Shown here: piece by piece, positions 3,170 to 61,047 of the stretch | Numbering within the stretch: position 1 is the first letter of the stretch | Layout: the number at the start of each line of letters is the position of its first letter | Program-made: the position numbers and the translations under genes | Source: Paramoeba atlantica | Taxonomy: Eukaryota; Protista; Discosea | DNA: 64,000 nucleotides | Direction of reading: 5' to 3' | Assembly: GCA_977017575.1 (NCBI GenBank) | Contig: CDRNVI010000161.1 | Coordinates: 1-64,000 of the forward strand | The notes under the pieces: generated by a model | Told to the model about the DNA's origin: nothing | The model's database searches: none | Seen by the model: the letters and a program-made list of their open reading frames with translations, nothing else

Positions 3170-6100
3170 AGACTTTTTCCCCCTTGAAAAACAACAAACA
3201 ACAAACCACAAACCAACCACACCACCAATCACTTCCCACTTCATCCGAATCAATACCCACTCTCCCCTCTTCCTCTTGAACCCCACCTTCAAAAGCTCTG
3301 CTCCCCACCCCTGACATAACAAAAGATTTTCAAGATCACCATGGCCATGCCTCTCAATCCTGGGCACCCTCAAACCAGATAGCACAGAAAACTTTCAGTT
3401 CCCAAAACTTCACTCGGGCCAAGTGGAGAAAGAGTCACAGCCAAGAAGGAGAGCAAGAGAAAGAAAAAGAAGGAAAAAAAGAAGAGGTCAGAGAAAGAGA
3501 AAAGGAAGGAAAAAGACAAAGAGAACCCCAAAAAAGCGAGAGAGCAGGAGCAGAAACAACGAAGAAAGAGAGAAAAGAAAGGAAGAGAACAAAAAGAAAA
3601 AGAAAATAGAGGAGGAAAAAAAACAGGAAGGAAAAAGAATGGAAAAAAAGAGGAAGAAAGAGAAAAATCAGAAAAAGAAAAGAATGAAAGAAACAAAAAA
3701 GAAAGAGAAAAAGAACTAAATCAAATGGACAATCCTCAGGCCCAGAAGACAACTTCACATCCTCCAAAATTCCTTGGCAATTGCTCGTACCGAAGATGCA
3801 GAGGCCAACACCAAAAAGTAATAGTCTCCTGATGCGAGAAGTGCCTCCTTACATTCTGCTGGAGAATCACACCCATCCTCAACCCAGACCCACAACACAT
3901 CCAACAACTCTTCTTCAATCATGGGCACTCTACAACCCTTCCTTATGGAAGCAAAGAAGAGGCTGCAATGAACTTCATCCTCTCTCTTGAAGGAGACTCC
4001 TTCTCAAAACACATCCCCCTCTGCTACATGGACTCAGTACCACTCTGCCTTTGTGATACAGTCATCAAAACTTTTTGTGCTGTATGACACCTCTTTCATA
4101 AGATACCCCAACTCCTGATCCTCCTCCCAAAATGGATCTTTGGCTGCCTTAGAAGGGGTACTCGAGGAATGAAAGAAGTGAAATCTCGATGCACCATGGT
4201 GCGAAATTTTGAGTGGGAGAGACTCCACAAAAAACTTGAGGGCAAGCTCAGCAAACTCAAGCAAAAGAGGAGGCAGAAGTCCACCAAGAAAACCAAGGCA
4301 GACCAGATTATTGAAGAGGTCAGAAAAGGACATCTCTCCAAAGCTGCAAGGAAGCTTCAATCCAAGAGTGGATTCAGGGATCTCTCAGTCCCAGAAAATC
4401 GTGAAACTGCAAAGAACCTCTACCCAAGATCTGAGCAGGTGTGGACTCCACCAGATCGAGCCGAAATTCCTGACTGGAAACCAGCAATCCTTGAACAAGA
4501 TGAGTTTCAGTCCTTTGACTCACTTGATCTGGCCCTTCGGAGACTTCCAAAAGGCCGCACACCAGGGCTCTCAGGAATGTTTTATGAGTTTGTCACACTC
4601 CTATGCACAGACCAAGAACTCCGCTCAACCCTCAAAGAATTGACTGTCTTAATCACCAACCAAAAACTCAATGAAACCATACACAACATCATGGCAACCT
4701 CTCTCTTCATTCCTCTGGCAAAAGGGGACAAAGGGATCCGTCCAATTGGTGTTGCTGAAGTTCTCAAGAGGTGGGCAGCGATTGCACTTGTTCTTGAAGT
4801 CCAACACGAGGGAATTCCTGAGAAATTGTCCCATCAGTATGGTGTATGCTTGCCAAGTGGTGCAGAAATGGTCCACAAAGCAATATCACAGCCTATCTCC
4901 ACCTCCACCCACAACATTATGCTGCGAAACTGGACATTGTTAATGCCTTCAATTCCATCTCAAGAAAAACCATCTTTGAGAGCACAGTCCAGCTGGCCCC
5001 TGTATTACTTCCATACCTCTACACCTTCTATTCTTCAGCAACACCCCTCACTCTCTCATGACCAGAACCACACCCTCACCATGGAGGAGGGTGTCCAGCA
5101 AGGAGATCCCCTTGGGACAATTTTCTTTTGTCTGGGATTTCATGGAATCCTCAATCCAATCTTTCAGAAGGTTGATGCTCCACTGAATGCACTTCTTCTT
5201 CTCCTCTCTGTCGATGATATATTTGTTTGTGGGAGCCTGGTTGCCATTGCAGAAATCACCACTCAGATCCAGAGTGTCCTCCCAAATGCCAACCTCAAAC
5301 TTGGCACAGAAAGGGGCAAAATGGTCTGTTTCTCTCCCGAAGCGCCCAGGAGCAATGACCTCAAAAATCTTGGCATTGGGAAGGCGGAAGTAATCACAGT
5401 TCTAGGGTCACCCATCGGGCTGAACACTCAAATTTCCAAGTGGCTTCACACCCTTGCTCAAGAATACCAACAAGCATCACAAGACCACTGTTTAATAATG
5501 TTCTCCAACCCCCATGAAAGTCTTGAGCTTTTTGTCAAAACCATCACACCCAAACTAACATACATCTGTCGCACAACACCTCTCTCTTTAACCCCTTTCC
5601 AAGACTTCATCAAGCAAACCACTACAACAAACATCAATTACCTCCTCAACCCCCTCCAAGTCCCCCACCTGCATCCAAACAAAGAACTCCATCTCTCTTG
5701 AGTAGAAGCTGCAGGCCTTCCAAAGTCAAAAGGTGGTGGTGGCTTGAGCTACTCTCAGAACACCCACCAAGCAGCCTTCCTTGGCTCCTGGATCTCAGTC
5801 TACCGATCCTGCTCTGAGTTCAAACCTGAACTTATCAACCTCTTTGAAGACTTCTGGAAGAGTGACTCACCCCAGCGCCAGGCTCTCCACCAAGCATATA
5901 TGACCATTTTGAAAGCTTCATCTTGAGCGAGTGGAAACTGCCAAGTGGTACCTCTGTCCATGAGCTCCTAACTCGATTGACAGAGCCACCATCTGACTCA
6001 ATGGGCACTGGAGAAAACTACAAACCACAGAAGAAGTTCACCTCCTGTGAACTTCAGGATGTCAAAAAGAAGATCATGGACCCAACACAAGACAAAAACC

Positions 6101-7260: not shown

Positions 7261-7379
7261 GGTCTTCAGCACTCGGGATTCGAATGTGGTCACCCACCAT
7301 TCTACTAACCGAGCCCACAGCTGCTTAACTTCCGAGTTCTGATGGGATCGGGTGCTTTCAACTGGGTATGACCGAAGAC
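7261..7379 (-). rRNA. 5S rRNA gene (intact), antisense to the 45S operon
   Basis: The reverse complement GTCTTCGGTCATACCCAGTTGAAAGCACCCGATCCCATCAGAACTCGGAAGTTAAGCAGCTG...GCTGAAGACC is 119 nt with paired ends and box A (AGTTAAGCAG), followed by T-runs. Confidence 0.96.
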
Positions 7380-13454: not shown

Positions 13455-14321
<867 letters not shown>

Positions 14322-18748: not shown

Positions 18749-18821
18749 GCCTCCGTAGCTCAGTCGGTAGAGCGCTAGACTCTTAATCTAGTGGCCGCGG
18801 GTTCGAGCCCCGCCGGGGGCT
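18749..18821 (+). tRNA. tRNA-Lys(CTT), IGS A
   Basis: Cloverleaf with acceptor GCCTCCG/CGGGGGC, anticodon loop CT-CTT-AA, GTTCGA T-loop and a downstream T-run. Confidence 0.97.
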
Positions 18822-18921
18822 GTTTTTTTTCTTTTTCTTTTTCTTTTTTTTTTTCTTTTTTCTTTTCTTTTTTTTTCTTTTTTTCGGGTACAAAAGTTCG
18901 AGTCCTGAAAAAAAAGTCGAA

Positions 18922-19037
18922 AAAATTGATGGCAGACGCATCCTTCGTCCAGAGAAAAGTTCTCGTTCTCGACTCGCCTTCGGCTCGTCTCAACTCGAAC
19001 TTTTCTCTGGACGAAGGATGCGTCTGCCATCAATTTT
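18922..19037. repeat. Perfect 41-bp inverted repeat with 34-nt loop
   Basis: AAAATTGATGGCAGACGCATCCTTCGTCCAGAGAAAAGTTC (18922-18962) and its exact reverse complement (18997-19037). It extends imperfectly for about 20 more bp. Confidence 0.97.
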
Positions 19038-19109
19038 CCTGACTTTTTTTTGGACAAGAATCTTTTTATTGGAGAAAAGTTTGATGATATAAAGTGATCA
19101 AAATTTTTA

Positions 19110-20815
19110 TTATTCACCGACACTTTTGTCAAGGTTCTCCTTTCCTTCAATCTTTTGTTTCTTCTTTTTTGGTTCTGAAAACTTGAAGGTACAGTCTTTA
19201 AAATGGTTTCCCCCACCAATATTTGCCCCTCCCAGAGGAGAACAAGAAGGAACAAAACTCTGTTGATACAAAGGTCCCATCGACTCCATCCCAGGAGCAA
19301 ACCGAAAATAGTATGACATATTCTCTTCTCCTGACTCAAAGACTGGGTGTTTGTTGATATATATATACTGGAAGTTCACCAGCTTCTTCAAATAAATCTT
19401 TTTCAGGAGGAGTTGGGGGTGGTTGGGAACAAACAAACTGCTGTGTTCGAGGACGAGGGGATGGAAAACCAACAAGGGGATGATGACTGGGACTGCTCCT
19501 TGGAGAAGGTCGGAATGGGACAACTCGAGGTGATTGATATGGAACTGGGGATCAAGATGGAATTGGAACTAAGGGTTGAGATGGGACTGTGGATCGAGAT
19601 GAGGGTCGAGATAGGACTGGGGGTCGAGATGAAATTGGAACTGAGGGTCGAGATGGGACTGGAAGTGGGACTGGTTGTTCAGATGAAGAGACAGTTGATG
19701 AGAGAACTGGTGATGGACAAGAAGATTGTGCACTAACACCAAATGCATTATTTTTGAGTTTACCTCGTTGTTCAGCTGATGGATCAGTGTATGAATTCAA
19801 GGGATCAGATCGAGCCATGTCCAGTCAACTTGATGACCATATGGGGGTTTCCTCCAGCAGCAAGAGAAAGAGTGACGAGAGTGGAGCGCAAACTCTGGTT
19901 TGTGAATCTCTTTCCAATTTGATCAGTGGCAATTCCTATTTTTTGGGCTGTCTCTTTAAACCAATTGCCAATTGTTTTCTCTCCCACAGGCTGGGTCTTA
20001 TACCAATTCCCAGATTTGAGGTAAGCACCATGAGTGTCGTTTGGCTGAAGAAAAACACGATCATCCTTTGGGTGTGCTGGACGTTTTGCAGTCATTTCAG
20101 CATAAAGATCGATAAAGACACCATCCAAAACACTACTTCTTTCCAAATCTTTTGGCGGAGGCATAGGTCGATCCCCTCCCTGGTGGTTTTTATCTTGGAT
20201 GGCTTGATACCTCAAAACACCAGTTTTTTCTCCAAAATCATTTGTTTCCCATTGAAAGTGACTCAATCGAAAATGTGCTTGCTCATTCCCTCAACAGCCA
20301 AGACACAAGCCTGCAATGATAAAAAGGGTCATGTTTAGTCCTTGAGGAGTGTCAATCCCCCAAACATTTACCATCGCAATCGCTTCTTCTGCAGTGACTG
20401 CACTGGCAGAAACTTTTCTCTTTTCAGGGATTTTTTGGATCAGAGATCGTGCTGTGTCTCGTGCTGCTCGTGCTGCTTTGAAAGCAGGATCCTCAAAAAT
20501 GTTGATGGTTTGTTGTTGTTCTTGAAAAAACTTTTCGTTAATTTGTTTTGCAACAGAATTCCAGATTGTTTTCATTGAAGAATCGCAGTAAGAGTCTTCA
20601 TTTTCCTTCTTCATATTGAAGGCGAATTTCTTCATGACTCGACAAATTTCTTGTCTGTTTGAAGTTGCAGGATGAAACGAGACATTGTTGCTGGGTTCTG
20701 CCAAGAACCGCTCAAACACCCTCCAGTATGACTCTTTTTGCTTTTTTCCTCCCTTTTGTCTCTCATTCATCGACTCTTCCATTTCTTGCGATGATTTGTT
20801 CATTCTTTCTTGCAC
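19110..20815 (-). pseudogene. Tyrosine recombinase (Crypton/DUF3504-like) with stops and frameshifts
   Basis: MKKENEDSY..SMKTIWNSVAK, IFEDPAFKAAR, TPQGL..LGC*GNE (TGA at the box I Arg, in frame with the next ORF), KNHQGG, WYKTQPVGEKTI, FTNQSLRST, LTGH, (+1 shift) PLNSY. A Pro/Ser linker follows, then NHFKDCTFKF. Confidence 0.85.
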
Positions 20816-20856
20816 TCAGTTCTTCGCTTCAAAAAAAAAAAGAAAATGTCGAGTTG

Positions 20857-21147
20857 CCAATGATGACGTCAATGATGAAAGGTGAAAAAAGGACGAGTCC
20901 TTTTGTCACTTCCTGACCAATGAATGAGTGGCACGTCAGGTTTTTCAAGTGAAGAGTGAAAAAAGAACGAGTCCTTTTTTCAACTTTTGGCCAATAGGAG
21001 GATGCCACATCAGAAAATGATTCAAAATAAACTTTTTTAGACAAGAAAAGATGACATCTCCATGCAAAACAAAAAACAATGCCTGAAAAAAGCTGATGTG
21101 GTGTTGTTTTATTAGAGGAAATCAGCCAATAGCCTGCAGCTACGTCA
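20857..21147. promoter_or_regulatory. Three CCAAT-N9-(C/G)(C/T)AC(G/A)TCA composites plus a TGACGTCA, upstream of the YR gene
   Basis: Composites at 20917-20938, 20991-21012 and 21126-21147, all with exactly 9-nt spacers. TGACGTCA at 20864-20871. Confidence 0.55.
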
Positions 21148-21249
21148 TCTGAAAACTTTTCTCTTTCCAAAGGTTTTTTCTCTTCTTTTTCTAAAGGTTT
21201 TTTCTCTCTTCTTTTTCTCTCTCTTTTTCTCTTCTCTTTTTTTTATTTT

Positions 21250-44854: not shown

Positions 44855-45925
44855 AAGAGAATCAGAAAATAAATTAAGAAATTACATTCAATATGGAGAC
44901 ATAATTAAGAAATTGAAATTACAAAAAATTAATATAAAAAAAAGAAAATAAAAAATAAATCAAATACATCAATTCAAAACAATTAAGAAATTTGATTGAA
45001 TCAACTTAAAAAATATCATAGATCTGAAATATAAATTCTAAAAATATCAGAGAATCAGAAAATAAATTAAGGAATTGCATTCAATATGGAGACATAATTA
45101 AGAAATTGAAATTACAAAAAAATAATATGAAAAAAATGAAATAAAAAATAAATCAAATACATCAATTCAAAACAATTAAGAAATTTTATTGAACCAACTT
45201 AAAAAATATCACAGATCTGAAATATAAGTTCTAAAAATATCAGAGAATCAGAAAATAAATTAAGAAATTACATTCAATATGAAGACATAATTAAGAAATT
45301 GAAATTACAAAAAATTAATATAAAAAAAAGAAAATAAAAAATAAATCAAATACATCAATTCAAAACAATTAAGAAATTTGATTGAATCAACTTAAAAAAT
45401 ATCATAGATCTGAAATATAAATTCTAAAAATATCAGAGAATCAGAAAATAAATTAAGGAATTGCATTCAATATGGAGACATAATTAAGAAATTGAAATTA
45501 CAAAAAAATAATATGAAAAAAATGAAATAAAAAATAAATCAAATACATCAATTCAAAACAATTAAGAAATTTTATTGAACCAACTTAAAAAATATCATAG
45601 ATCTGAAAAATAAGTTCTAAAAATATCAGAGAATCAGAAAATAAATTAAAGAATTGCATTCAATATAGAAACATAATTAAGAAATTGAAATTACAAAAAA
45701 TTAATGTAAAAAAAAGAAAATAAAAAATAAATCAAATACATCAATTCAAAACAATTAAGAAATTTGATTGAACCAACTTAAAAAATATTTTTAAAATAAA
45801 AAATAAATTTAAAAAATATTACAAAATCAGAAAATAAATTAAAACATTTTATTCAATATAGAAATATAATTAAGAAATTGAAATTACAAAAAAATAATAT
45901 AAAAAAAATTACTTTTAATCATTTC
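44855..45925. repeat. 193-bp satellite (IGS B), about 5.5 units, alternating two-monomer pattern
   Basis: Anchor C at 44922, 45115, 45308, 45501, 45694 and 45887. Units 1/3 and 2/4 share diagnostic variants. Confidence 0.95.
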
Positions 45926-47919: not shown

Positions 47920-50900
47920 AAAAAAAGACTTTTTCCCCCTTGAAAAACAACAAACAACAAACCACAAACCAACCACACCACCAATCACTTCCCACTTCAT
48001 TCGAATCAATACTCACTCTCCCCTCTTCCTCTCAAACCCCACCTTCAAAAGCTCTGCTCCCCACCCCTGATGTAACAACAGATTTTCAAGATTGCCATGG
48101 CCATGCCTCTCGATCTTGGGCACCCTCAAACCAGATAGCACAGAAAACTTTCGGTTCCCAAAACTTCACTTGGGCCAAGTGGAGAAAGAGTCACAGCCAA
48201 GAAGGAGAGCAAGAGAAAGAAAAAGAAGGAAAAAAAGAAGAGGTCAGAGAAAGAGAAAAGGAAGGAAAAAGACAAAGAGAACCCCAAAAAAGCGAGAGAG
48301 CAGGAGCAGAAACAATGAAGAAAGAGAGAAAAGAAAGGAAGAGAATGAAAAGAAAAAGAAAATAGAGGAGGAAAAAAAACAGAAAGGAAAAAGAATGGAA
48401 AAAAAGAGGAAGAAAGAGAAAAATCAGAAAAAGAAAAGAATGAAAGAAACAGAAAAGAAAGAGAAAAAGAACTAAATCGAATGGACAATCCTCAGGCCCA
48501 AAAGACAACTTCACATCCTCCAAAATTCCTTGGCAATTGCTTGTACCAAAGATGCAGAGGCCAACACCAAAAAGTAATAGTCTCCCGATGTGAGAAGTGC
48601 CTCCTTACATTCTGCTCCTTTTCCCACCACAGGAAGTCACAAACTCTCTGTCACCCTCTTCCTCCTCCCCCCCCCCAACCTCTCCCATCCCTAACCTCCC
48701 CTCCCTGCTCTCCCTCCAATCCCTCCTCCCACCCTCCCTCCCCAATTCCCTCCCACCCTCCCTCCCCACTCCCCTCCCCCACTCCCTATCCCTCTCTGCA
48801 TCTCAATTTTAATCCTGATCTCGATCCCTCCAGCACCCCTCCCCCTTCATGTAACAACCCTGAATGCAATGGTAAAGCAGAAGTTGGCTCCCACATCTCC
48901 TGTAACCACTGCCAAATGCATTATTGTTCAACACAATGCCACAACAGCACAGAAAACCATCCCATCACCCCTTTTCCTCCTCCCCCATCTCACCCCTCAC
49001 CTCACACACCTCTCCACCCTCCTTCCCATCCACCTCATTTGCCCCCCCCCCAAGCCCACCTCACCACCTCCCTTCCCACACCCCCTCTCACTCCCCTCTC
49101 ACTCCCCCTCCCCAACAACTTTCCCACCGCCCTTCTTCTCATGGCCCACCTTCTTTTCAACAAACTCCTCCCTCCCTCTCCCTTATCCTTGAACTCTTCG
49201 AAAATGGCTCCTATGAAGATATAGTCTTAACTGTCCCCCGCTTCAGAAACTTGGATCGCGCAAGAACAAGCTCCCTCCAAACATGCAGAGCTCGTGACCT
49301 CCTTGGACTTGGAATCAACCACTTCTTTGATGGCCAACACCATTCTCTCCTCAGATTTCAAAAATGCTCAACAAACAAAGCAAGATGAGATATCGTCCCC
49401 CTTCTCTTGAATCGCAAGTAGCACGGGGAGAATAGCCTTTCTCCTACAGTTCTGGCAACACTGGAAACCTGCACCACAGCCTCCCAAAATCTCGCTCACA
49501 AATGTCAAAGACAACTTCTTTTTCATCTGTGGGGATGGATCTGTTGCTACCAACCCAAATGGATGGTGCGTTGGAAGCTCATCACTCTGTGTCATTCGTG
49601 AGAACAAGGAAATTGTCCACTCTCTCATCCATTCTCCCAAGCCCTGAAAACCATATTAACTGGAGAAACCACGAGAACAACTCTTTGGCAGATAGGATCA
49701 CAAGTTTAGCAGTACACAGAGGATGCCCTGACAACACCTGGAGAATCACACCCATCCTCAACCCAGACCCACAACACATCCAACAACTCTTCTTCAATCA
49801 TGGGCGCTCTACAACCCTTCCTCATGGAAGCAAAGAAGAGGCTGCAATGAACTTCATCCTCTCTCTTGAAGGAGACTCCTTCTCAAAACACATCCCCCTC
49901 CGCTACATGGACTCAGTACCACTCTGCCTTCGTGATACAGTCATCAAAACTTTTTGTGCTGTATGACACCTCTTTCATAAGATACCCCAACTCCTGATCC
50001 TCCTCCCAAAATGGATCATTGGCTGCCTTAGAAGGAGTACTCGAGGAATGAAAGAAGTGAAATCTTGATGCACCATGGTGCGAAATTTTGAGTGGGAGAG
50101 ACTCCACAAAAAACTCGAGGGCAAGCTCAGCAAACTCAAGCAAAAGAGGAGGCAGAAGTCCACCAAGAAAACCAAGGCAGACCAGATTATTGAAGAGGTC
50201 AGAAAAGGACATCTCTCCAAAGCTGCAAGGAAGCTTCAATCCAAGAGTGGATTCAGGGATCTCTCAGTCCCAGAAAATCGTGAAACTGCGAAGAACCTCT
50301 ACCCAAGATCTGAGCAGGCGTGGACTCCACCAGATGGAGAAGAAATTCCTGACTGGAAACCAGCAATCCTTGAACAAGATGAGTTTCAGTCCTTTGACTC
50401 ACTTGATCTGGCCCTTCGGAGACTTCCAAAAGGCCGCACACCAGGGCTCTCAGGAATGTCTTATGAGTTTGTCACACTCCTATGCACAGACCGAGAACTC
50501 TGCTCAACCCTCAAAGAATTGACTGTCTTAATCACCAACCAAAAACTCAATGAAACCATACACAACATCATGGCAACCTCTCTCTTCATTCCTCTGGCAA
50601 AAGGGTCCAGCAAGGAGATCCCCTCGGGACAATTTTCTTTTGTCTGGGATTTCATGGAATCCTCAATCCAATCTTTCAGAAGGTTGATGCTCCACCGAAT
50701 GCACTTCTTCTTCTCCTCTTTGTCGATGATATATTTGTTTGTGGGAGCCCAGTTGCCATTGCAGAAATCACCACTCAGATCCAGAGTGTCCTCCCAAATG
50801 CCAACCTCAAACTTGGCACAGAAAGGGGCAAAATGGTCTGTTTCTCTCCCGAAGCGCCCAGGAGCAATGACCTCAAAAATCTTGGCATTGGGAAGGCGGA

Positions 50901-51314
50901 AGTAATCACAGTTCTAGGGTCACCCATCGGGCTGAACTCAAATTTCCAAGTGGCTTCACACCCTTGCTCAAGAATACCAACAAGCATCGCAAGACCACTG
51001 TTTAATAATGTTCTCCAACCCCCATGAAAGTCTTGAGCTTTTTGTTAAAACCATCACACCCAAACTAACATACATCTGTTGCACAACACCTCTCTCTTTA
51101 ACCCCTTTCCAAGACTTCATCAAGCAAACCACTACAACAAACATCAATTACCTCCTCAACCCCCTCCAAGTCCCCCACCTGCATCCAAACAAAGAACTCC
51201 ATCTCTCTCAAGTAGAAGCTGCAGGCCTTCCAAAGTCAAAAGGTGGTGGTGGCTTGAGCTACTCTCAGAACACCCACCAAGCAGCCTTCCTTGGCTCCTG
51301 GATCTCAGTCTACC
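47920..51314 (+). mobile_element. CRE-like retrotransposon, IGS B copy: keeps the N-terminal Zn-finger region, has an internal RT deletion and lost its 3' half
   Basis: 48481-49224 encodes two Cys-rich repeats (CLYQRC..CEKC..C..HH; CNNPEC..CNHC..C..CH) around Pro-rich tracts. It lacks A 4727-5093 and is truncated at the equivalent of A 5804. Confidence 0.85.
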
Positions 51315-51984
51315 AAAGAGAGAAAACCCGATCAAAAAAGGGAAGAAAGGGGAACAAGAAAAAGGGGAACAAGAAAAAGAGGAACAAAAAAAAGAGAAAA
51401 AGTGAGAAAGTGAAAAAGTGAAAAAAAAGAGAAGAGATAAAAGTGAAAAAGAGAAGAAAAAACAGAAAAGTAAAGAAATAAAAAAAATAAAGAGAGAACC
51501 CATTCCGGTCCCATTCATAAAGGGCAAAAAAGTTCGAGAAAGAGGAAAGAAAAAAAGAGAGAAAAAAGAAAAAAAGAGAGAAAAAAGAAAAAGAGAGAGA
51601 AAAAAGAAAAAGAGAGAGAAAAGAAAAAAGAGAGAGAAAAGAAAAAAGAAAAAGAGAGAGAAAAGAAAAAGAGAAGAGAGAGAAGAGAAAAGGCAAAACA
51701 AAACCAATGAGGCCAGAAAAATTATGAACCCTAAAATCTTTTTTTTTGGTGCTAAAATAAACCAGCGTTGAAAAAATATTTTACAAGGAAATTTTGATGA
51801 GAATTTTTTTTTCAATGCCCTGAAAAACCTTTGCAATTGCGCTCCTTTCCCTTGGCAACCCGGTGAGAGAGAGGAAAGAGCGAAAGGAGAAGAAAAGAGG
51901 AAAGAGAAAAAGAAAAGAAAGAAAGAGAAATTAAAAAAAGAATTAACTTAAAAAAAAAAGAACTAAAAAAAAAGGGAAAGAGGA

Positions 51985-54181: not shown

Positions 54182-55258
<1,077 letters not shown>

Positions 55259-59890: not shown

Positions 59891-59963
59891 GCCTCCGTAG
59901 CTCAGTCGGTAGAGCGCTAGACTCTTAATCTAGTGGCCGCGGGTTCGAGCCCCGCCGGGGGCT
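59891..59963 (+). tRNA. tRNA-Lys(CTT), IGS B
   Basis: Identical to 18749-18821. Confidence 0.97.
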
Positions 59964-60326: not shown

Positions 60327-61047
60327 CACAGCCCGATAGTGAGAGCAAAATTTCCGCCAGTTCCCTATTATGGGCAGTTTTGCCATGGTCGTGTTTTCCA
60401 TACATTTTTTTGAGTTTTTTTTCAATTTTGCAGAATGAACTCGTCTGTTCGAAAGCAATTTTGTTCTTTGAAAAAACAATCTAAGATTCAGAAGAACGTT
60501 TCCCAGGTCTGGACGAGACGGATTTTTGAAAAATTAGTTTCTCTCAAAGTTATCACCCCCACAAGAGAGCCATTTGTCCAACACTTTTTCTTCGTCATTT
60601 TTTTGTTCAAGGCGAAAGGGACACCACATTTTTTGTGGAAAACGCTCATTTGTGTTGGTGTCCTTCTTTTCTTTGCAGAAAATTGACAAAGTGATTGGAT
60701 GACATTGCCTCGTGTGGAAAAAAAGGGTTGAAAGGATCAGAGAGGGTTTGCCACCAATGTAACCAACCAAGAAACCATCAAAAGAGGTGCTTTTGTCACA
60801 CTGTCTTGTCTAGATTTTCTTTTCTCTTTCCACTGAAGATCAAACCATGTTTCTTGAAAAAAAATCCCGGTGGACCACAAAAACCTTGACTCTTTCATGG
60901 ACACAATGCATCCCCTCCTCTTCGCTTGCCATCGCCAAGAAATCAAATTGGGTTTTTTGCCACCGAGTTTTGCTTTATTTGGTTGAAAAGAAATGGTCCT
61001 CAACTTTGTGCTAGTGGCGGAAATTTCGCGCCCACTATCCAGCTGTG
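60327..61047. mobile_element. About 720-bp non-autonomous TIR element (CACAGC...GCTGTG termini), unit B only
   Basis: Left end CACAGCCCGATAGTGAGAGCAAAATTTCCGCCAGT versus reverse complement of right end CACAGCTGGATAGTGGGCGCGAAATTTCCGCCACT (35 bp, imperfect). TTT flanks both sides. Confidence 0.8.

Follow-up and report, generated by a model that had tools for sequence, protein, structure and literature searches.

A decayed Crypton-like tyrosine-recombinase element with a terminal rod hairpin in an rDNA spacer of Paramoeba atlantica, and the ends of its relatives

Terminal repeats were not found in CryptonA and CryptonI elements, the 50 copies in Rhodnius included (PMC3212892), and a study of Glomhopper found none either, direct or inverted (PMC13465315). 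A 2026 review describes the mechanism of Crypton transposition as without experimental demonstration (PMC13565253), and CryptonF, an active element, has gained copies despite clean excisions (PMC9977147). Integron attC sites recombine as a folded strand, by a single exchange and replication (PMC3458562, PMC11641012).

Here we describe an element in a 64,000-nucleotide stretch of P. atlantica DNA (contig CDRNVI010000161.1, positions 1 to 64,000), referred to as the window. It resembles CryptonA and CryptonI in its single tyrosine-recombinase (YR) ORF with no extra or C-terminal domain, its 1.5–2.3 kb size class, its Pfam matches (DUF3504, Phage_integrase and QRICH1), its closest named relatives being arthropod proteins, and its non-autonomous derivatives; it differs in having asymmetric inverted repeats, a terminal rod hairpin and a 2–3-bp overlap. 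An initial annotation of this DNA held a long foldback end to be unlike described Cryptons, which agrees with the papers that report no terminal repeats for CryptonA and CryptonI. With CryptonF and CryptonS the element shares YR insertion at short microhomology without true target duplication, but in those elements the direct repeats measure 4–6 bp, against an overlap of 2–3 bp here, and the protein carries GCR1_C or another C-terminal part; the 6-bp direct repeats and GCR1_C of CryptonF itself are absent.

Similarities to more distant systems are also evident. Helitron2/Helentron elements have asymmetric inverted repeats, one 5' and one subterminal before a 3' hairpin, with the ORF in either orientation (PMC3627910), although they encode an HUH Rep-helicase and carry the hairpin within 20–30 bp of the end, whereas here there is a YR and a rod of 90–200 nt. 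IntDOT of CTnDOT is a YR that requires only 2 bp of identity beside the first cut (PMC2817482), but the element that it serves is bacterial and conjugative, uses arm-type sites as well as accessory factors, and has no terminal rod. The proposed likeness to integron attC/IntI lies in a folded strand that has two arms with an unpaired spacer, further unpaired bases and a variable tip, and in very short homology at the crossover; here, however, each end of a eukaryotic element able to move itself carries part of the site, the protein is Cre-like, and single-strand use is putative. The end layout was described in no paper found in our literature search, which had Repbase Reports outside its range. 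Some CryptonV and Eulor5/6 elements may have inverted or self-complementary ends, which could lower the novelty of this layout. We know of no folded-strand transposition by a tyrosine recombinase in eukaryotes.

The element, its boundaries and its recombinase

The locus is very probably a dead copy of a YR-only DUF3504 transposon of CryptonA/CryptonI-like type, ending in the order IR-L, ORF, IR-R and rod hairpin. Its features in the window are as follows.

18749-18821, plus strand: host tRNA-Lys(CTT) in the rDNA intergenic spacer, given for context and outside the element; an identical element-free copy lies at 59891-59963
18886-21163, minus strand: whole element, 2278 bp (equivalently 18884-21161, since the GA/TC dinucleotide is common to both ends)
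18884-18885, minus strand: GA overlap dinucleotide at the 3' junction, from end motifs and empty-site comparison
18886-18899, minus strand: 3' terminus, one half of the junction site, made up of the 8-nt arm GAACTTTT and the 6-nt spacer GTACCC
18892-19066: rod hairpin, 175 nt, about -70 kcal/mol, with a 2x2 internal loop beside the outer arm
18922-18962, plus strand: perfect 41-bp arm, whose inner end repeats the half-site GAGAAAAGTTC
18963-18996: rod tip, 34 nt, with three stacked 3-bp helices, GA/GA-type loops on the minus strand and a GCC-GAA-GGC cap
18997-19037, plus strand: perfect 41-bp partner arm, from an inverted-repeat search
19058-19082, plus strand: complete site in an internal position, reading arm, 6 nt, GA, arm and opposite in orientation to the junction site, from a pattern scan
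19072-19087, plus strand: IR-R, subterminal inverted repeat adjoining the rod, matching IR-L at 11 of 12 nt, or over 16 nt with a 3-nt gap
19110-19788, minus strand: decayed Pro/Ser-rich ORF tail ending in an NHFKDCTF motif
19789-20803, minus strand: YR core-binding and catalytic domains, broken by a TGA and a frame change near 19800, with the Tyr codon at 19791-19789
20882-20909 and 20957-20982: two imperfect palindromes with core ACGAGT in the upstream region
21145-21163, minus strand: IR-L, 5' terminal inverted repeat, starting with the GA overlap

The initial annotation placed a Crypton-like YR element at 18885-21156, beginning about 64 bp 3' of tRNA-Lys in its T-rich flank and on the opposite strand. 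A DUF3504-type, YR-only element is indeed present, with both filled and empty sites, as is its position: 64 nt of T-tract separate its end from the tRNA, which is on the plus strand and the YR ORF on the minus. The far end is most likely at 21163 instead, giving the span 18886-21163, and the IR-L/IR-R pair (16–19 bp) had been missed. The value of this dead copy lies in the adjoining rDNA unit, in which the same tRNA (59891) stands without the element. Excising 18886-21163 in silico restores 35 consecutive nt of the unit-2 spacer, a match that is not to a strict orthologous allele because the spacer T-tracts are unlike between the units. A boundary set by a 5-bp TTTTC direct repeat was rejected, as it fits unit 2 over 23 nt as against 35 nt and is contradicted by the left flank of locus L012, where the element starts with GA.

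A second filled/empty pair is provided by a 388-bp element nested in the Molorchus locus L012, compared with the unfilled L011; the overlap is 3 bp, TGA, and TGA alone is common to its two junctions. Loci L011 and L012 diverge directly before the left GA, which together with the filled/empty pairs puts the overlap at 2–3 bp, GA included, and a longer target duplication is absent in both comparisons. This 388-bp non-autonomous rod element (L012 1980-2375, against L011 2361-2390) sits upstream in an autonomous Molorchus element, and its insertion site looks like joined-end sequence on both sides.

The element is taken up by a single broken ORF, and no second enzyme is seen among the Pfam matches of the ORFs scanned. 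Pieces of the broken protein were searched one by one, and the N-terminal piece yielded 88 relatives; those with names are proteins of beetles, a butterfly, cockroaches and a centipede. The best match is P0004, an intact 521-aa paralog from the ENA assembly that also contains the window locus (49% identity to the window core over 327 aa, E 1e-113). The Pfam matches of the window copy to DUF3504 (E 1e-3) and Phage_integrase are both weak, as is that of the family to QRICH1, while DUF3504 exceeds the cut-off in P0007 and P0011. Neighbors of the recombinase in the Atlas are DUF3504 clusters. The suggestion of a separate YR family was therefore not upheld, these Pfam and Atlas results placing the protein in the DUF3504 Crypton group. 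We read the element as a variant Crypton in spite of its terminal inverted repeats, taking the earlier "none" to mean that none was found. GCR1_C and DUF3435 had no Pfam match in the family proteins scanned; the lack of DUF3435 and the length of only 2.3 kb distinguish the element from Starships, and no reverse-transcriptase ORF of the DIRS/Ngaro kind occurs inside 18886-21163 or in the 1.7–2.1-kb relatives.

A structure model of P0004 (pLDDT 83) has Cre as its best fold match (E 3e-6) and resembles Cre and Xer, with IntI far lower in the same search. Built from the N-terminal 200 aa of our own hits, a tree joins the window protein to P0004/L003 (98/87) and recovers an arthropod-type clade (97/92), these support values being rough. 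The 90%-identity cluster of P0007 includes beetle (Molorchus) as well as butterfly (Pieris) proteins, suggestive of horizontal transfer between insects in the recent past. A peptide-pattern search of JGI metagenome and viral contigs gave no related loci, and no exact match to the end motif was returned.

All of the YR residues, R-H-R-(H)-Y, are present in P0004. In the window copy the first R is a TGA (20293-20291, minus strand) and the first H a Q, while R, H and Y are present; the reported loss of the box I Arg is thus confirmed, and so is a frame shift preceding the Tyr, the frame changing directly before 19791. A further in-frame TGA lies at 19554, a second frame change near 19350-19400, and possibly a second TGA at 19807, near the frame change just before the Tyr. 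The motif QSLR (19897-19886) had been counted as decay, but intact relatives also have Q there (NQSER in the P0020 ORF, NQSHR in L004). L002, a near-identical assembly of the same locus and probably of the same sample, has zero differences inside the element, so the lesions are not peculiar to the assembly of the window.

The ACGAGT palindromes are possible recombinase or transcription-factor sites. Duplicated palindrome-like motifs, together with CCAAT and TGACGTCA boxes, are found in the upstream regions of both the window element (20860-21150) and L003 (1590-1730), and some of these motifs resemble the arm of their own element, hinting at autoregulation.

The rod hairpin and the layout of ends

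The core of the rod is the perfect 41-bp inverted repeat with a 34-nt loop (18922-18962 and 18997-19037) noted in the initial annotation. Shuffles of the element (n=20) give longest perfect repeats of 7–11 bp, and the rod fold has a z of about -14 on either strand. The two direct repeats in the loop and an extra 11-mer are likewise present, 18892-18902 being the exact complement of 18994-19004; the alternative pairing proposed between these, however, is about 45 kcal/mol worse when forced (-24.6 versus -69.2 kcal/mol), and the 11-mer is better read as a predicted, repeated recombinase half-site. The arms had been noted to keep their CpGs although the ORF has decayed. Observed/expected CpG stands at 1.5 for the rod, against 0.5 for the YR core and 0.77 for the intact paralog, and other rods are CpG-rich too. 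The perfect arms hold only about four CpGs, and the outer-stem pair 18919/19040 looks deaminated; with about a third of the CpGs lost in the ORF, we estimate a chance of about 0.2 that all four in the arms would persist. These figures do not establish arm correction.

The layout IR-L, ORF, IR-R, rod is common to protist and insect relatives, whose rods share no sequence. It was compared in seven elements: that of the window, L003, L007, L009, L011, the nested 388-bp element in L012, and L001. The closest intact paralog, L003, from the same assembly as the window locus, has a 27-bp inverted-repeat pair and a rod; the pair is 9 bp in L009, about 45 bp in the Molorchus L011 (whose rod has a 36-bp perfect arm) and 13 bp in the nested element, each with a rod. 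In L007 a rod and IR-R are present and a left inverted repeat was not found. L001 has a 10-bp pair, with rod and inverted repeat 5' of the ORF and not 3' (243-430); its YR gene is split after CPVR by an apparent intron. Contig ends cut both L006, which has a rod behind the ORF, and L008, which has an inverted-repeat pair of about 45 bp, and L010 and L013 are fragments with no rod. Asymmetric inverted repeats of 9–45 bp plus a rod are thus found in all complete members.

The ends share further details. The terminus G-N5-TT-N6 followed by GA (G at -14 and TT at -8/-7 from GA) occurs in 7/7, GA starts every left end found, and a pyrimidine 2x2 loop lies directly inside the terminal arm in six of the seven. 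The 6 nt preceding GA are alike across families (GTACCC, GTTACC, TTTACC, and ATAAGT twice), which indicates that they are not carried host sequence. Four of the seven rods have GNA mini-hairpins at their tips, and the strand of the mini-hairpin varies from element to element. The motif-plus-stem pattern, scanned over 127 kb, matched only at element ends (6/7; L009 was missed) and often on both strands, the latter reflecting a full twin site between IR-R and rod; this shows specificity only, the pattern having been derived from the elements it is scored on. Extra half-sites lie inside the rods of the window element and L003.

From the absence of described terminal repeats in CryptonA and CryptonI, and from the MITE that does insert in this spacer (in unit 2), it might be thought that an ordinary Crypton lies here beside an independent foldback or MITE insertion, or that the hairpin is an artefact of assembly. 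Six other elements, however, have a rod in the same position and share the end motif; the rod arms co-vary with the inverted repeat of their own element, and the window rod is identical in the second assembly, L002. An independent foldback insertion is ruled out by the rods and end motifs of the relatives and by this co-variation, and its probability with that of the artefact is very small indeed. One layout with unrelated rod sequences marks the rod as a native feature of the end.

The joined-end site and how the element may move

When the ends of each element are joined at GA, 8-bp inverted arms surround a 9-nt spacer, with 41/56 positions matching (7, 7, 7, 3, 7, 5 and 5 of 8 per element). 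Other spacings give 7–26 matches and shifted centers 10–21; swapping arms among elements gives a mean of 32.6 (permutation p 0.003), the elements being related and the right arm of L007 being inferred from IR-R. Folding of the joined strand yields a single, longer rod, in which a 5–6-nt bubble adjoins GA. We predict from these patterns that the joined ends form a core site of recombinase type, with an inverted twin across the rod.

The best explanation overall, and in our judgement an even prospect, is a circular intermediate recombined as a folded strand in the manner of integrons. The element would move as a circle, as the symmetry of the junction and the permuted rod of L001 suggest, and joining at GA would form the core site of two 8-bp arms and a 9-nt spacer, with a second, inverted copy already lying between IR-R and the rod. 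One strand would fold, either as a cruciform or in the course of replication, with IR-R paired to IR-L or, before excision, to the A-rich target flank instead; the rod would supply the other arm, giving an attC-like substrate with duplex in both arms, an unpaired bubble of 6 nt, and the 2x2 loop set at a constant distance. At GA the YR would exchange one strand, 2–3 bp of target identity being enough, and host replication would complete the exchange, so that the element copies itself. The window copy would have entered the TTTTC-rich tract behind the tRNA terminator and then decayed. The rod 5' of the ORF in L001 is as expected if its circle opened at the twin site.

Use of a folded strand is favored by the 6 nt that appear fixed in the element and could not match a target, by the fixed 2x2 loop, by pairing that is conserved without sequence, and by the gain of CryptonF copies. 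On the other side, no circle, single-stranded form or preference for one strand was seen; folding energies are alike on both strands, and the strand of the GNA tip varies between elements; target flanks bear a weak resemblance to the arm (27/56, p 0.10); the end pattern was scored on the elements from which it was derived; and a double-stranded circle with two inverted sites accounts for the same sequences.

Such a circle could be recombined as duplex, by two strand exchanges that tolerate a mismatched overlap as with IntDOT, the rod serving as cruciform, origin or binding scaffold; we consider this a serious contender, if a doubtful one. The joined ends make a normal duplex site, the 9-nt spacer suits a 7-bp overlap with the 2 bp of identity that IntDOT requires (PMC2817482), a double-stranded circle is the accepted Crypton model (PMC13565253), and the rods of the window element and L003 contain extra half-sites. 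Against it, the terminal 6 nt look fixed in the element and not taken from earlier hosts, and the 90–200 nt of pairing, the fixed 2x2 loop and the mini-hairpin tips are left unexplained.

The initial annotation had suggested a cruciform or single-stranded substrate, like those of attC or of hairpin telomeres. The attC-like folded DNA survives as the favored model; the hairpin telomere fits poorly, the sites being some 85 bp away from the axis of the hairpin. The rods are long and nearly perfect, their tips are structured, and tip orientation varies between elements as flip/flop ends would, all of which might indicate a YR acting as telomere resolvase or rolling-hairpin factor on an element that replicates as a linear, hairpin-ended molecule. 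The symmetric site is, however, at the base of the rod and not at the palindrome axis, from which it is 45–100 bp distant across the family; each element has a single rod and encodes neither polymerase nor Rep, and the recombinase model resembles Cre and Xer. We regard this as improbable.

For the folded-strand model, an extension to a widespread Crypton lineage, from amoeba-like protists to insects, with integron-style recombination of folded single strands, 2-bp target homology and replicative resolution, is a tentative proposal whose prospects we put somewhat below even. If true, replicative movement of this type would explain the gain of Crypton copies. The end grammar itself fixes exactly where the element starts and stops, identifies the crossover dinucleotide and the likely binding arms, and gives a short substrate; in combination with the intact enzymes P0004 and P0092 it makes the Crypton mechanism directly testable. 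Such elements, non-autonomous derivatives included, can be annotated by the same rule, which is also relevant to the origin of the domesticated ZMYM, QRICH1 and KCTD1 proteins.

tRNA genes and the rDNA spacer

Docking at tRNA genes, proposed earlier as a family property, is not borne out: a tRNA gene is near one of the three other loci from the window assembly and near none from other sources. The one case is L007, with a tRNA-Ala 270 bp upstream of the ATG, and none is near L003, L010, L009, L013 (20 kb), L001, L011 or L012. Three 3' flanks from the window assembly start with GAAAA, which occurs every 44 bp in this spacer, and a preference for A/T tracts is enough to account for the tRNA proximity. 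Active targeting of tRNA genes by this lineage through the Pol III machinery, whatever the recombination mechanism, would be in keeping with the 64-bp distance in the window and with L007; given the seven loci without a tRNA, the frequency of GAAAA and the choice of the window copy for its tRNA, we think it unlikely. The tRNA-Ala of L007 (3658-3745) is low-scoring and is followed by TTTTACCGA, the same 9 nt as at the L007 3' end.

The window spans about 1.5 units of a 41–44-kb eukaryotic rDNA repeat that contains 5S, polyubiquitin, tRNA-Lys, 18S-5.8S-28S, tRNA-Gly and tRNA-Met genes; its 18S is 2.1 kb and AT-rich, and appears to be amoebal and similar to that of Paramoeba. In four public runs from one study, none recorded as RNA, 69–88% of the window's words are present. 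The 5S and several tRNA genes are scattered through the spacer (7261-7379, 18749-18821, 30906-30978 and 32360-32433), and 36902-37125 is 5S-region-like with no Rfam call. A polyubiquitin gene lies inside the repeat unit (13455-14246 and 54182-55201), with three units in one copy and four in the next. In the T-tract behind the second tRNA-Lys is a MITE of about 710 bp (60327-61037), missing from unit 1, with imperfect terminal inverted repeats starting CACAGC and a possible 9-bp TTTTTCTTT duplication, uncertain in T-tract flanks. Both rDNA units also contain a non-LTR-type RT-like ORF (4169-5701 and 50075-51421), with different breaks in each, and, in the same place, a 193-bp tandem satellite (1-1181 and 44858-45908).
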